Positions 7,158-15,142 of a DNA stretch of 64,000 bases are shown here, one piece after another. This stretch comes from Perkinsus chesapeaki ATCC PRA-425. Its lineage: Eukaryota; Protista; Perkinsozoa. The notes beneath the pieces are model-generated. The model was not told where the DNA came from. It saw only the letters and a program-made list of their open reading frames with translations, and ran no database searches. The position numbers and the translations under genes are program-made. The DNA is taken from NCBI GenBank assembly GCA_013115145.1, contig JAAPAO010000111.1, positions 10,341 to 74,340 on the forward strand, in the 5' to 3' direction. How positions within the stretch are numbered: the stretch's first letter is position 1; each line of letters begins with the position of its first letter.

Positions 7158-9297
7158 GGCCGAAAGATACTGTGGGAGTTCAGCATGATCCACAGTCCGC
7201 ATATTGTTCGCACGCGTGCGCAGATGTCGCTCGTACGTCTCAGAAGATTAGAACAAAGAAAGGAGAGATGAAAACCAAACTGTTCATTGCAATTTGAAAT
7301 TGTGCGCCTGCGTATAAAGGCGCGCGCTATTCGCTGATAGAGGACTTCGCGCACGCCCGCATTTTAACTTGCTGAAAGTCACTACCTGACTTCCAACTTA
7401 ACTAAAACGCGTGGCTGTGCTCAATCAGTCCAGTAAAAGAAACTAACCATTTCAAACAGTGTGTTCGAAAACTGGTAGTAAACTTCAATGCTGTGATTGA
7501 ACTCTTGGCTGAGAGCACGTGACAGTCGGCTATTATTGTAGTCCGGATACCCCGCAGTATTAGGGCGATTCGCAGCTCCTCCCGCACACCTCGAGGTAAA
7601 CGCGCATTCTTTATCCTATAGACTTCATGGATCGGGCTGTTCTTTGTGCTGTTCCGTAGAACTGTAACAAGCTCAAACGCGCAAAGCAATAAACCGGTCT
7701 TTGAGGCCTGCGTTCTAATCACCGAGCAGAGTCGATAACCAGAACGGAGTACACGCAGTGAGGGGATCGATGAGACGAAACAATCACTGGGGGCAGCTCT
7801 TACGAGCGAAACCCTCAAAGTAAGTTCCAAATACTGAACAACTGCCTAAAACGAATATAACTCACATCTACGACTACATGCTAGTCATCACCAAATGTAG
7901 TTATTTAATAGTTATCTAGTACAATTAACAGCACGCATACAGTATGAGTAACTCATAGCGCGGTCGCAAGGCGAGCGAGATCCACAGATGGAGCCGCCGC
8001 ACAAACGGCACAAAAGGCAGATATACTGAAACCTACATGTCTCATCGTCGTAACTCGTCATGCCTAGTGGGCACACGACATCATTTGACAGAAGATCTCT
8101 TCCTCTCTTCACTTGATCGACGCCGCTCGGGCCTACTGCCCCTCGTGGCTGTAAATAACCTCTCCACTCTGTGACTGACAATATGTCACGGTGACCATTT
8201 TGGGATGTGTCCATCATGGACTGTCCATGATGGACAGTCCATGACAGTGTCTGTCGGCTGTGAAGACCTGTTGTAGGATTCTGTGCAGTCTATATGCATG
8301 CGTGCTATAATAATCTTCACTATAGATCCTATAACTAAGCGGCCGGCGCGGTCATCGCCTGCCCTTGGTGTGTTCTTGGTTATCACTACTATCTCTAGCG
8401 TAAGCTAAGTTAGCTTAGCTAACTATCCCTCAAGGTCCCTCCTGTTGTTTTTCGCATCTGAGCCTCTAGTTCTACATCAACTAACTAGTTAACCGAACCC
8501 GATAACAGACCCGCCGTCCGGGCAAGCTTCTGTGTGCCAGTATCGTTGGAAGGGGACGCACATACAATCTGCGTGGTTTCCCGGTGTTCCGTTCCACGGG
8601 ATAATTCCCGTAATTCCGCAATCGAGCTGTCGTTTTTCCGGAAATTCCACGGTAAAAAAACGGCCGCCGATTAGGACTTTCAGCATCGAGAACTACCACC
8701 TTGGCGACATTTTCAGTTCATACACAGCTATCCTCGATATCTCATGCGGCCAAGACAGTCGAATAATATATTGAATATTGTGTATTCATGTTCAACTAGT
8801 CAACTTGATCGCACAATACGGCGTTAGTGACGTCGCATTGCCTTCGAACAGGTGTCCTTTTAAGATATGCTATCTTCCCACGTTGCATAAAGCAACTTTC
8901 TCTTTGTGATCACGCGACGATGGTGAGTCGCTACATGGGTTTCGCGAGTTGAGTATCCGGCGCTTCACTGGGAGGCGTTGACGGAATGCTTCTAGCTTTG
9001 TATTTTTCTAGCTTTCTGCTTCTGTATGTACTCTCTACTATCTGTAGTGACTGCAAAACCCAACACGGACCTTTTAACTCTTGAACACTCTTATGCGAGC
9101 GGCATAGCCTTATGTCATGCATTCCGTTGAAGAAGGTGCGAGCTCTGAGAATGAACTATTCACCTCATCGGTATAGTAACCACTTCGTCTAGGGTCGCGT
9201 CCACAGGGGGCAGCTGTACAGCCACCCCGGATTCGAATGTCTTCGAAGATTTATTCGCACTTCCAGACGCGGGTGAAATGCCCGTATTCACGGGTGC

Positions 9298-12200
9298 CTA
9301 CATTAAAATATCTGGAGCCTGCCTAGACGCTGCTTCGACCTCCAGAAGACCATTTAGCCGTTGCAACGCATCGCCCCAACCATTCTGATTCACCGGGATC
9401 GTGACCCACTCACCTAAGGATGCCGAGATCGCTGGGGGTACCAGAAGCCAAGTTCACTGACTACTCGTACCTTCAAACTGAGGATCTAAAGTCCGTATTA
9501 TGTCACGTGGGAAAGTGTCTATAAATCCGGCCCTTTGCGACACTTTGTATATTTCCTCCCGCTCACAACTGAGCAGATTCGAGACGCATCCACATACGTC
9601 ATCAACATCGAGGCTTACAATCCCGATAACTCTACACCGGTGCCATTGTGTCCCCACCAGCTTGTCAGGTGGAATCTGTTCTCGGGTGTGGTGTGGCCAG
9701 AGCGTCCTAGGGGTGATAGTTAGTCTTGTGGGGACCGACATCATCATACCAGCGGAGCAGGCCCACACAGTCGCGGCGTCTAACTTCTCGACAATGCCTG
9801 AGAGCTCTTGAGTCAGTTCCTCTGGCGTGCTACAGTTACTCCCCGGACAGAAGAGTGCCAAGTGGTCGTAGAAGCCGTTGAGCAAGATGAAGACTCTCGT
9901 GCCTAAAAAAGAGATGAAAATCCAAATTCGGCTTCCGCAGGAGAGGGCATTCCGCGCCTTGACGAAGATATACATTTATTGTTAGGGTCGGATGGTGACA
10001 TGAAAGATCAACAATGGACGTGACATACCTTTTATGGAGAGAAGTAAAGAGTTGTCAGACTGTAGTGCCTCCAAGTAGGTAGGCGGTGACACGCTGGCAA
10101 GGTTGGCAGGATCCTCGCAAACCACTATGGCATAGTCCGGGAGGCTCTCTCTTAAGCTAGCTAGTAACCGATTTGAATGTAACAAGGAGCAAGTTGAGTT
10201 GAATGGTCGGGAAGGGAAGTTCCTTCTAACACAAACCGACCTAAAGAAGAATCTTCATCGTAGAACGGCCGCGGCCCTCACCAACGATTGAATTTCGCCA
10301 GGATTCTCGAAGGATCTTTGAAGGCTTTCATGAATGGTGAGGGACACTCCGTGGGGCAATTCGAGAAAAAGTACCTGAGGATTGGAAGGGTCTTGGAACC
10401 TTGACTGGCTATGAAAATAAAATCTTCATAAACAACCGCCGCCTGTCTTACATATCAGGTGTGGCGAAACGCTCAGCTATCTCAGAAGAAGGGACACTCT
10501 GTTGTAGAATAGGGTGGCTGAAGGACGCTCTATAGGGCTCCACAAATCTTCTAGTTACAGTATCTAAGCAGTGCACAGTCAAGTACAATCAACGATAAAA
10601 TAACACTGAGTCGAGATTTAAGGGAGATTTACCAAGCCGAGCGGGAAACAACGCCAGCTGATACTGTCAGCCTGACAGGCGGCTCACCGAGTGCTTCCCA
10701 CATAGCTTTCAGACTCTGCTCGATGGGTCTTGTACCGGCTCTAACCGTGAGATGTACTTCCAGAGGATCCAGGTGCCATGGTACTGGGACGTTGCTGGGT
10801 TGGGTGACAACACAAACTTCCACACCACTCTCTTGGCATATCTTTTCAACTTGATTGATAATATCCTCTCTTGTAGAACCCTAGAAGAAGTAACAATCCC
10901 TGGTTTACAGATAAAAATACTCCCAGACGATACGGGTTGCCTTGGACGGCTAACCTCTCCATCCTGGGTTCCAGGTAGATGGATATACATAATTTTGGGG
11001 ACCTTTACTGAGGATGTCTTCAGCTTCTGATTTCACACTTCTACGTTGAAGAAGTATTGCTCGAAGACAGAACTTAGCAATTCGGGGATTTAAATCAAGC
11101 CAACGCTACTGAAGGTCCGTAAGGTGCCTGCTGATCCTCATACTCTTTTGTGACTGGAACGACCGATGGTAATGGAGGTAATCGGAGCCTGATCAGAGTC
11201 TGAGATAGCCCGACTCCTACAGGGGAGGTTAGTCTACCTGCAGCTGAACTGAGTAGCACATCCAGCGAGCATGGGATCTCTCGTAGCAAGGGCATGCGCC
11301 AGTATGTGTTTCGGTCCAAGGAAGGCGAAAGGGTATCCTCTAGATTCCCATTTGGTTGGGGCCACCTGCGGTACTGCCAATAGACTTCGTGGACGGCTTT
11401 TTAAGACAGCATGTGAGAGTGTGATAAGGTGATTGTTATGCCTTGAATTCGCCGTGAACTGCAAATCCCAAGGAGATGACAGAGAGTAATTTATTCTCTA
11501 AAGGGGAGATCAAGCGCTCCGTGTTGAAGTGAAAACCAGAAGTGTCATAGAGTCGTGCCCTTACGATGTCTAGTGCAGCAGCTACTGCCTTGCAGACTGC
11601 AGTGGCTGCGTCTCCCGAAGAGTCGGATAATACTGGAGGGTGTAAGATAGAACGGAGGAGCATGTCGTCGCGCAGAGATCTGCCAATCGGTACTCATCTG
11701 CTGGACAGCAGAATTTCGTCACCCTTCTTTTGCAGTATATGCAATCGAAGTGATATCTGCCTGCTGGTCAATGCGACTGCCAAATGGCTGCGAATTCCCA
11801 GGGATCTCCGGCCTGGTAGACCTAGCATGGCGACAGGCCACAGCCAGGCTCACAAAGTTTCTGGGATGGAGTCTTCAAAGCCAAGCCCTTGGAGAGCACG
11901 GATAGCTATTTGGCCCCCAGTCCCAAATTCCTTCCCAACAGCCATGTTACGGAAACTATCAATCCAGAATGCTCTCACGACCTGTTTCAAATAGAAACGC
12001 CTCGGTACCATGTTCACACTGGGAATGCCTACCTGTGAGGCACAGTCAGGAAGAACTGGAAGTTTGATTGATTCAATGGTCTCTGGAGAAGCGATGACAC
12101 AGCCTGCTTCCAACCAAAGGGGCACCTGATAAAAATTACATAGCCCTTGCTGAGATTCACATGCATACATTTAAGACTTCTGCCAGGATATCTTGTAGAT

Positions 12201-15142
12201 AGGTATAGTCACTTGTATTCCCAAGGGACAAGTACGGTATAGAATCTGAGACAGCATCGCCTACCCGATCTGTGAGGTTCATTCCAACCCACCGTCTCCC
12301 CGTGGGCAGGTCCTTGTGCATTTCCTCAAAACCTTCTCAGTTTCAAGGCTCATTTCCTTCAACATATCATTAAACTGAGCGGTATGTCGAAGCGTTCGAG
12401 GCCCGGAGCTCTACGACTCCAGGCCGCTGCCCACCTTATCCTCGTTTGTAGAAGAACTGCGACATCTAATCATATCCCTGAGGACCTGGGATGAGATTAT
12501 ATTGTCCTGAATAGACTACAGACGATTCAGGCCAGACAGAAATGAAGCACTCCAGCTATCGTGAATATTTCTCGCATTTGTCTCTAATACGTTAGCAGTC
12601 CAGTAGAAGGGCATTTCAATCGCCTGGAGAAACTCCTCTCGTGTGGTCAATTCGGTAAAACATTTCACGCCAGTGATTCTCTATTTCTTCTCACATCTGG
12701 AAGATGAATCGTCCTCAGCACTTTCTCCTCTTCTTCGACAAAGTGGCTTGCGCAGCCTATAATAGCCATTAATTGCCCTGCCTCATTGCAGTTGAACCTT
12801 TGATGAGGTTAGGGATTGAGGTTGGACAACCAGCTGCTACAAATCCCGCAAGATATAGCAGAATGGGTTCAATCGGAATACCACAAATGCAGGGGTCGCT
12901 CTCACCTATGACGATCGGTCCAAAGCACAAGGCAACCATCTGGACCAAACTTCCCCTCAACACCGTATATGGAACATACGCTGTCCAGAGGGGACACACC
13001 ACTCAAATCTCCTTTTGCGTCCTCCGCTCCTTGGCTCATTGAACCTATCCGAGCCGAGTAGAGGACGGACGGCCGGGAATACGTGGCGGGCCGCACTGAA
13101 ATTTGGCATTTTAGCGCATGGCGTCTGAGGACTGTGACTCCCAATACGAGCTATATTGAAGCCGAATAGGGAGGAGTGTTCGGCTCCCTTACGCGTGACT
13201 TCACGTATATCATATAACGTGAGCCGAGCAGTGAAGCCATTGCCACCGTTTTCCGGGAACTGGGTTAGATAACCGAAGGCATCGTCGTGGACGAAGTCGA
13301 GCTGCAGAGTACCGAGAACGTGATATAGTTGCTGGTACAGTTGATCTGCAAATAGGTAATAATATCCAAGTCGACGCAGACGAGCTATTTAGGCCAGTGG
13401 TATTCGGCACCCTGGACTGGTTACAGCTCTCAAGACTCTGATAGCGCGGATACAGGAGCGCCACCTCATCTTTCAGTTGCTAATATCTTACCAAGTAGCT
13501 GTGGATCGCAAGTGTCAGCAAGAACTGTCAACTTAAGATGTTCTTCTGTCGCAACCGTAGCTGTTATAGTTGTTCCAGGTAGCCTCCATCTTTGACCGTC
13601 ATTCGATTCGAAGCCGGCGGAGCGGAGCTTCGTAGCAATCTTCTTCCGTGTCGCCAGGGAGGCATCAACGCCCAACGCCCCTCGGTCCACCGAGCGACAC
13701 ACAGACATTTGGAGCTTGCCTAAGTACTGCCGAGGTACCACCGCGGCGATGGTAGCCAACTCATGCTGGATTGACCGAGACGCAGCAAGTACTGTTAACG
13801 GCTCATGATTGTACCTGAATTATTTCAGAGGATGCTATTTACTGCTAGAAAAGGATGCTTGGTTCCTCACAGCTCCTCCATACACTCCTTCAGAACATCT
13901 CCAAATTTATCGTAGCATTCAGTATCTCTAGCGATAAAGCCCAGTGCCTGTAATGCTGAGCATGATCGGCGGCCAAACCAGTCGTGACGCTGAGCAGACG
14001 TGTTTCGACCACATCGGTTTAGTCGGACTTAGCGATTTGTCTGGCCAACGATCTAGATTGCTAGGAAGTTACGATCCACTAGAGGAAGATAGACGATGAG
14101 TGACGTACATCCATGAGTCTCTCACCGAGCTCGATATCTTCATGACATAGATCCTATCGGCCTCCTCGAATGAATACTTCGGGACTACGGGAACTGTGAT
14201 GCAGTCGTCAACCGTAACTGTAGAGCGAGTGCCCATGGCAGCACAGACTTCCGCTGATGCCGTACATCGTAGCCCAGTTTGGATCCGACTGAGTTGTTGA
14301 TATCGTACAGAATCAAGGTCAAGAACTCTACTTATGATATTATCTCGAGAAGGGTCTAGCCAGCGTTTAGACTGAGGGCAACTGTCAAGTGCCCCAGGTG
14401 AGCATCGCTCCGAGCACCTAGGTCCCTACGCTTGGAGAGATTCGGCATGTGGCGCTACCAACGATGATGGCGAGACACATTGGGCATGCCCTGCCTTGAA
14501 GCACTGAGGTTACTGTAGGTTCAATATGACAGTAGTATACAGTTTCACGCGTCGACACTACGACCCAGCTATATAGCCTACCTTGCTAGTGGCTTCTTCG
14601 AGCGGCTCTACACTATTTGCCTGCCTCCCTGAAATCAGGATCACACTGCGAGAGTGTTCGCTGAGTCATCTGTCTCTCGAATATGCATACCATGAAGGAG
14701 CGCAAGATCGATTAGACACCGGCACATTGCCTTACCGTCTATAGTGTTTTTCCTTTTTAGCTTGTCCGTTATGCCTAATACAACCTATTTGATAATGGTG
14801 AGTAGCTGTACAGTATACCTTTTATCTTTATACCACCGGCAACCAAGTCTTTCTCTGACGTTCTTCGTGCTAGGTAATGTATAAGAGCCACGTTAACATT
14901 CTCAGGGCGCGTGACAAGTGCATGGTTGAGCAAATCACCGAGGAGGTTATCTAGCCCGTGCTCGTGGATGAACCTGATCCACGCTTCAGTGTCCACACGA
15001 AGACTATGCGGCCCTACTTCGTGCAGTCCTCTTGAGCTGGAGTACATGCAGGACGCTCACTGTGGGACGCAGTGCGCCCATTATTATCGGCAGACCCGAA
15101 CTGGCCTGTCTTTGGGCCCTCCAAGTTACCCGGTGGCACCAT
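9298..15142 (-). CDS. Multi-exon protein: RIIa/Dpy-30-like N-terminal module plus at least 3 tandem divergent ATP:guanido phosphotransferase (arginine/creatine kinase-like) domains
   Basis: In-frame splicing checked at introns 13346-13491, 9903-10028, 9707-9749, 9569-9618 and 9432-9470; stop TAG at 9298-9300. Domain 1: ECYDKFGDVLKECMEEL, QMSVCRSVDRG, TVATEEHLKL, DFVHDDAFGYLTQFPENGGNG. Middle domain: ANSRHNNHLITL, ATQFSCRLRLPPL. Last domain: SVCVRRNFPSRPFNSTCS, VFILLNGFYDHLAL, FHLTSWWGHNGTGVELSG, DALQRLNGLLEVE. The start codon (15142) is tentative. Confidence 0.75.

Follow-up and report, generated by a model that had tools for sequence, protein, structure and literature searches.

Background

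Phosphagen kinases are textbook energy-buffering enzymes. The units of the contiguous multi-domain forms are closely alike and catalytically competent; the protein-arginine kinase McsB lacks the N-terminal alpha-helical domain of phosphagen kinases and has a C-terminal domain of its own. Arginine and creatine kinases combine the domains PF02807 (ATP-gua_PtransN) and PF00217 (ATP-gua_Ptrans), as in Limulus arginine kinase (1BG0/1M15). A contiguous creatine kinase trimer occurs in the tails of sea-urchin sperm (PMC3080659), and phosphagen kinases are also native to Perkinsus: the title of Fraga, Ellington and Suzuki 2022 (Comp Biochem Physiol B 262:110758, cited in PMC9678886) names creatine kinases of Perkinsus marinus, which, as far as that title and its citation go, are monomeric and described as active. 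The gene considered here belongs to a species of the same genus, a relative of the oyster parasite. It lies on the minus strand at 9160..15142 of a 64-kb stretch of Perkinsus chesapeaki contig JAAPAO010000111.1 (assembly GCA_013115145.1), and this whole stretch is called the window below. It is annotated with 29 exons and encodes the hypothetical protein FOL47_000616 (1156 aa, here P0001), a name that comes from a match in a protein collection; a HMMER query of one exon returned FOL47_000616 at 100% identity.

The comparison of P0001 with these systems yields likenesses and differences. It shares the superfamily with the P. marinus creatine kinases, whereas it has no detectable sequence words in common with any other database protein. 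Like the flagellar trimer, it is one polypeptide that would fit three units of ~290-350 aa and possibly has an N-terminal anchor; unlike the trimer, its units are mutually unrecognisable, only one of them is demonstrable, and that one is without the catalytic residue set. An earlier reading of this DNA from its letters alone (the sequence-only reading) had proposed at least three tandem arginine or creatine kinase folds at 9298-13920, each without catalytic motifs. All peptides that it quoted were found on the minus strand where it had placed them, within this single annotated gene: VATEEHLKL at 13529-13555, FGYLTQFPENGGNG at 13236-13277, AKGDLSGVSPL..CLVLWTD at 12905-13018, NSRHNNHLITL at 11417-11449, ATRDPMLAG at 11261-11287, LLNGFYDHLAL at 9853-9885 and LTSWWGHNGTG at 9636-9668. 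The extent that it gave was too small, as the gene itself begins at 15142 and its kinase-like part at 14371.

Family membership of the first unit

Judged by its sequence, the segment of residues 138-482 (unit 1) is a genuine, very diverged and apparently complete phosphagen-kinase module, with a probable alpha-helical N-domain followed by an alpha/beta domain of catalytic type, both in the order seen in arginine and creatine kinases. The N-domain (residues 138-243, 13871..14371, minus strand) was delimited with PF02807, an arginine-kinase hidden Markov model (HMM) and hhalign. It contains ..GLRFTVDDCI.. and LGFIARDTECYDKFGDVLKECMEEL, and it was aligned by both HMM and hhalign to the family sequence iGiYagdaesYkvFaelldpiiee. 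The catalytic-type domain (residues 244-482, 12695..13814, minus strand), recognised with PF00217, hhalign and phmmer against the PDB, has ATEEHLK at the position of NEEDHLR, FGYLTQFPENGGNG as the Cys-loop, in which Phe stands in for Cys, and CLVLWTDRHRFNCNE at the position of DISNxxRLG. Counterparts of GFTLDD, GIYAGDxxSYxxF, NEEDHLR, GYLTxCPxNLGT and DISNxxRLG can all be seen in unit 1.

In Pfam, residues 244-450 alone matched PF00217 with 23.1 bits (E 5.4e-5), above the cut-off of 22.4, and the same family gave 19.8 bits with the whole of P0001. Residues 138-250 matched PF02807 with 20.5 bits (E 6.9e-4), below the cut-off of 25.7, in a position upstream of PF00217 as in the family. Single exons gave a faint signal at most. 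An HMM and an HH profile were built from 56 full-length bacterial arginine kinases, whose genes were found by a degenerate DNA pattern for W-[VI]-NEEDHLR. Unit 1 scored 27-28 bits with this HMM; its hhalign comparison with the 56 kinases reached a probability of 95% (E 4.7e-8, z 16 in local and 24 in global mode), and its score was matched by none of 120 shuffles in either mode. All ten PDB matches obtained by phmmer with unit 1 at E up to 10 were arginine, taurocyamine or protein-arginine kinases. The protein-language-model (Atlas) neighbours of unit 1 were phosphagen-kinase family members in 100 of 100 cases, at a score of 0.94 and with 216 of 256 features shared. Additionally, when the arginine-kinase HMM was run over the 3098 stop-free segments of the window, the three best matches all fell in this gene and on this strand.

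The sequence-only reading had also suspected a fourth copy near 12900-13050. This segment proved instead to be the C-terminal end of unit 1, and the fourth copy was rejected: hhalign places CLVLWTDRHRFNCNE on the C-terminal VFDISNRxRLGxxE motif of the family, and the global alignment puts SIYGVEG..CLVLWTDRHRFNCNEAGQLM on LQIRGxxGE..VFDISNRxRLGxxE at the end of unit 1.

As a separate observation, genomes of Desulfobacterales often carry exact W-[VI]-NEEDHLR signatures of arginine kinases (loci including L005, L048 and L069). They were also found in metagenome-assembled genomes under the labels Saccharibacteria, Kaiserbacteria and Rickettsia typhi; contamination or transfer may account for these cases.

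Catalytic residues

The family residues mapped onto unit 1 bind phosphates and guanidinium in the transition-state structure 1BG0. Identity to the arginine and creatine kinases is ~17%, and the differences reach the catalytic positions. Compared with Limulus arginine kinase, E224 of the NEED segment is replaced by T332, E225 is kept as E333, D226 is replaced by E334 and R229 by K337; on the side of the Cys-loop, C271 corresponds to F380, T273 to Glu and R280 to T389. In a less reliable stretch of the hhalign alignment, Tyr and Lys stand at R309 and E314. The same alignment shows that unit 1 has lost ~40 residues after the first catalytic-domain helix and before the NEED strand, a stretch that in phosphagen kinases includes elements of the substrate-closing loop. 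The reactive Cys of the CP(S/T)N loop is absent from unit 1, as are several of the Arg that bind phosphate; therefore it looks like a pseudoenzyme and not like an active arginine or creatine kinase, and it would not be expected to show activity. Unit 1 is also embedded in a protein of >1100 aa.

The pseudo-kinase nature claimed by the sequence-only reading was thus upheld for unit 1, a relative of the phosphagen-kinase fold. The reading was also correct that every copy lacks the Cys, since Phe380 stands at its place in unit 1 and the putative Cys-loops of the two later units, ATRDPMLAG and LTSWWGHNGTG, have no Cys at that position. Its statement that the acidic cluster was lost throughout went too far: the equivalent of Glu225 is kept in unit 1, so the cluster is not wholly lost there.

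This kept Glu, together with the conservative change of R229 to Lys, could suggest an enzyme of altered chemistry, in which unit 1 would phosphorylate another substrate or only hydrolyse or bind ATP. McsB (PDB 8GQD) is among the best PDB matches of unit 1 over the core from the NEED strand to the Cys-loop, and the two share a short connection before that strand. However, other residues stand at the positions of Cys271 and Arg280, and probably at those of Arg309 and Glu314, and the deletion ahead of the NEED strand is large; unit 1 further differs from McsB by its N-domain signal and by the absence of a match to the C-terminal domain of McsB (McsB_C) in Pfam. An altered enzyme is considered highly improbable.

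Structure of the gene

The coding sequence of P0001 was rebuilt exactly from the window as 29 exons running from 15142 to 9160, in a frame without internal stop. The 28 introns measure 41-229 nt, a wider range than the 39-146 nt previously given, and ten of them are 108-229 nt long; the longest exons reach 107 codons. All introns are GT-AG, with a purine at donor position +3 in every case and G at +5 in 24 of the 28, and all 28 pairs of splice sites fit GTRNG...YAG. The intact frame and splice sites asserted by the earlier reading were therefore confirmed. The last annotated exon (9160..9259, minus strand) holds a tail without recognisable domain and the stop codon. GC content is higher at first codon positions (GC1, 0.56) than at second positions (GC2, 0.45), and the same trend is seen in other open reading frames (ORFs) of the window. 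In a crude exon-intron dynamic programme the gene strand scored 59.6, the opposite strand 29.0 and ten shuffles 17-36; other gene-bearing stretches of the window scored 49-129. These gene-structure signals, which are no evidence of selection, speak for a real nuclear gene rich in introns and against a dead relic. The open frame points the same way, because at so deep a divergence every frame would have been wrecked by neutral decay.

Two DNA data sets were identical to the window across the locus, with zero variants. In one of the DNA runs (X4) the assembly breaks at 11923-11978 into a unitig of 56 nt, with a depth of 136 compared to ~60 in the flanking contigs; either a short repeat or a heterozygous bubble left unresolved might account for this unitig, and another run (X3) crosses the site in a single contig.

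Several exons are probably missing from the annotated model or placed in the wrong frame, notably in the putative second unit, as family-like sequence at 12169-12374 and 11366-11497 (minus strand) is apparently skipped or misframed. The first of these regions includes a 52-codon exon at 12169-12324 (..KDLPTGRRWVGMNLTDRVGDAVSD..LSLGNTSDYTYLQDILAEVLN), in a frame other than the annotated one, which resembles the GFTLDD..GIYAxD..Y..F part of the family N-domain. The second is an exon of 44 codons with NSRHNNHLITL, which is gained if the donor at 11565 takes a nearer and better acceptor, cccctttag. A curated model that adds both exons and a read-through at 13148-13192 is open over 1231 aa with 27 GT-AG introns. 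All the quoted peptides lie within the locus, but the annotated model passes over the exon with NSRHNNHLITL. The curated unit 2 exon requires a poor GAG acceptor near 12324, and because of this weak acceptor there may be an old frameshift relic near 12320.

Another unused frame of the same strand, at 9192-9287, gave the second-best match to the arginine-kinase HMM in the window (7.0 bits), with ..HSNPGWLYSCP.. laid on ..kklGyLtsCP. This segment overlaps the last intron and exon of P0001 in a different frame. A fourth unit at this place was rejected, since the match is not significant once corrected for 3098 segments; it could be a chance match or the relic of a further truncated unit.

Putative second and third units

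The ~640 residues after unit 1 probably comprise two further modules that share the origin of unit 1 and have diverged beyond profile detection, which would give three units in all. Putative unit 2 (residues 483-834, 10688..12506, minus strand), weakly indicated by motif tests and Atlas, contains GRSLRDDMLLRSILHPP, NSRHNNHLITL, ATRDPMLAG and EVHLTVRAGTRPIEQSLKAMWEAL, and the exon at 12169-12324 is its candidate N-domain exon. It was laid on the family by eye with GSLRDDMLLRSILHPP, NSRHNNHLITL, ATRDPMLAG, FSCRLRLPPL and EVHLTVRAGTRPIEQ. Putative unit 3 (residues 835-1123, 9302..10563, minus strand), weakly indicated by a two-motif test and Atlas, contains CPTECPSPFMKAFKDPSRILAKFN, SVCVRRNFPSRPFN, LLNGFYDHLAL, LTSWWGHNGTG and the C-terminal helix GDALQRLNGLLEVE; its segments laid on the family by eye are SPFMKAFKDPSRILAKFN, SVCVRRNFPSRPFN, the same two motifs and GDALQRLNGLLEVE.

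An unbounded chain of ordered motifs gave z 2.1 for unit 2, a value reached by 10 of 300 shuffles (p ~0.03), and z 1.1 for unit 3. The two-motif test, which requires a NEED-strand block and a Cys-loop block 18-45 residues apart and was aimed at the motifs that the sequence-only reading had itself picked, placed unit 3 exactly on LLNGFYDHLAL and LTSWWGHNGTG with 7.2 bits, a score reached by 1 of 400 shuffles and by 2 of 286 natural bacterial proteins (p ~0.005); for unit 2 the test gave p ~0.1. The Atlas neighbours of residues 449-770 (score 0.82) were all phosphagen-kinase families, with N-domain families first, and those of residues 771-1156 (score 0.56) were phosphagen kinases in 100 of 100 cases; by the calibration of the tool, scores of 0.82 and 0.56 are leads only, and the context of unit 1 may leak into them. 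The secondary structure of unit 3 in an AlphaFold2 model (predicted local distance difference test, pLDDT, of 35) runs strand FILL, strand HLALFC, helix, strand, strand RFHLTSWW, strand, helix and final helix, an order that agrees with the core of the phosphagen-kinase family.

Origin and possible role

On balance we lean towards an origin of P0001 in the ATP:guanidino phosphotransferase family with the loss of its ability to work as a phosphagen kinase, a judgement that covers the additional units, the docking element and the scaffold role set out here. If the residues after unit 1 are two more modules, the protein would be a decayed relative of the contiguous multi-domain phosphagen kinases. 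The helix pair near the N-terminus, FIHEHGLDNLLGDLLNHALVTRPENVNVALIHYLARR (14862..14972, minus strand), may be a docking element resembling the dimerisation and docking domain of RIIa type. Helices are predicted near the N-terminus by AlphaFold2 at residues 36-46, 49-63 and 70-78, and the segment FIHEHGLDNLLGDLLNHALVTRPENVNVALIHYL was matched in PDB phmmer to the docking domains of PKA RI-alpha and RI-beta, at E 0.6-1.0. Given two decayed modules and such a docking element, P0001 would act as a non-catalytic scaffold or as a subunit binding nucleotide or guanidino ligands. It might be anchored in the manner of flagellar or AKAP-bound energy-shuttle enzymes, perhaps paired with the organism's own active creatine kinases.

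A number of results weigh against this interpretation, and the largest group concerns the later units. Pfam, which supports the first of the three proposed domains, was silent for the middle and the last, whether spliced parts, unspliced exons or alternative exons were searched. Our arginine-kinase HMM scored units 2 and 3 no higher than shuffles, and the hhalign z values, taken from 120 shuffles, were 0.2 (local mode) and 1.2 (global mode) for unit 2, and -0.3 (local) and -0.8 (global) for unit 3. No phosphagen kinase was returned by PDB phmmer with either unit, and phmmer and blastp between the units, unit 1 included, showed no pairwise similarity. The motif chain with bounded spacing was not significant for unit 2 or for unit 3. 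AlphaFold2 models made without alignment had a pLDDT of 38 for the whole of P0001 and 35 for unit 3, which is unusable, and Foldseek searches of these models against the PDB gave noise only. The RIIa-like assignment of the N-terminus is itself weak, as it rests on E ~1, and the N-terminal segment had no match in Pfam at E up to 10, RIIa included. Moreover, the family-like pieces at 12169-12324, 11366-11497 and 9192-9287 lie in unannotated frames or exons and could be frameshift relics.

Another explanation is a single degenerate module at residues 138-482, followed by ~670 unrelated or largely disordered residues in which the later motifs were chance picks by eye. The absence of profile, pairwise and PDB signal from residues 483-1156 and the outcome of the spacing-bounded chain test suit this explanation; the GWLYSCP match in the unused frame at 9192-9287 shows how readily such motifs arise, and the WWGHNGTG stretch aligns equally well to a nanobody framework. 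It is less suited to the rarity of the two-motif score of unit 3, which falls on the predicted pair with family-like spacing, or to the Atlas neighbours of both later parts, which are phosphagen kinases in 100 of 100 cases with N-domain families leading where the putative N-domain lies. The leftover length would hold two further units of ~290-350 aa, and the predicted strand-strand-helix-strand-strand order of unit 3 suits the family core. The single module is therefore regarded as possible and, in our estimate, rather doubtful. Of the three folds of the sequence-only reading, the first stands far beyond chance; the middle and last were not established, as they have no profile match and their motif tests are marginal and partly post hoc.

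A second group of unfavourable results concerns the history of the gene. No orthologue or paralogue of P0001 was found: HMMER with the exon at 13493-13792 against 1.84 billion cluster representatives returned the protein itself and two spurious repeat proteins, and word-indexed searches of 5.8 billion sequences with the whole of P0001, unit 1 alone and the unit 1 region returned no other protein. A metagenome scan for relatives of P0001 found none, and the locus was absent from two small RNA runs of P. chesapeaki. A protein without relatives in such collections and without RNA evidence at its locus might be a decaying pseudogene, a no longer functional copy of a multi-domain creatine kinase gene through which an ab initio predictor threaded an open frame by inventing introns. 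The ten introns of 108-229 nt, some of which hide family-like pieces in other frames, and the poor GAG acceptor of the curated unit 2 exon are consistent with this. However, the units are mutually unrecognisable and unit 1 scores ~23 bits, and neutral decay to that extent would bring indels and ~1 stop per 21 codons in every frame, whereas exons of up to 107 codons persist. All 28 pairs of splice sites also fit the GTRNG...YAG consensus, and the gene-model score, which is specific to this strand, lies at the level of other gene-bearing stretches in the window. A pseudogene is thus unlikely.

A more specific form of the non-catalytic scaffold reading can be advanced only tentatively. In this form P0001 would descend from a three-domain creatine or arginine kinase and, though catalytically dead, would be maintained by selection. 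It would be RIIa-docked (for example in the zoospore flagellum) as a scaffold or nucleotide- or phosphagen-sensing regulatory partner of the active Perkinsus creatine kinases, and it would be the first pseudo-phosphagen kinase. We know of no described pseudoenzyme branch of the phosphagen-kinase family, and a full-text literature search pairing 'phosphagen kinase' with 'pseudokinase' gave no paper. If this is correct, the pseudoenzyme catalogue would gain a new class from a conserved, catalytically dead paralogue of an early-branching myzozoan, which would also be a hint that phosphocreatine shuttles in the flagella of protists are regulated or anchored. The safe result is that the hypothetical protein FOL47_000616 gains a family assignment and that its annotated gene model is probably in need of correction.

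Another annotated product

A case of doubtful annotation was also seen at 343-993 of the window on the minus strand (L121 24183-25983), where a single-exon ORF encodes ribosomal protein L15e (Pfam E 3e-88). This ORF is annotated inside a 690-aa product with amino-acid permease domains, so that two genes were probably merged by the gene caller.

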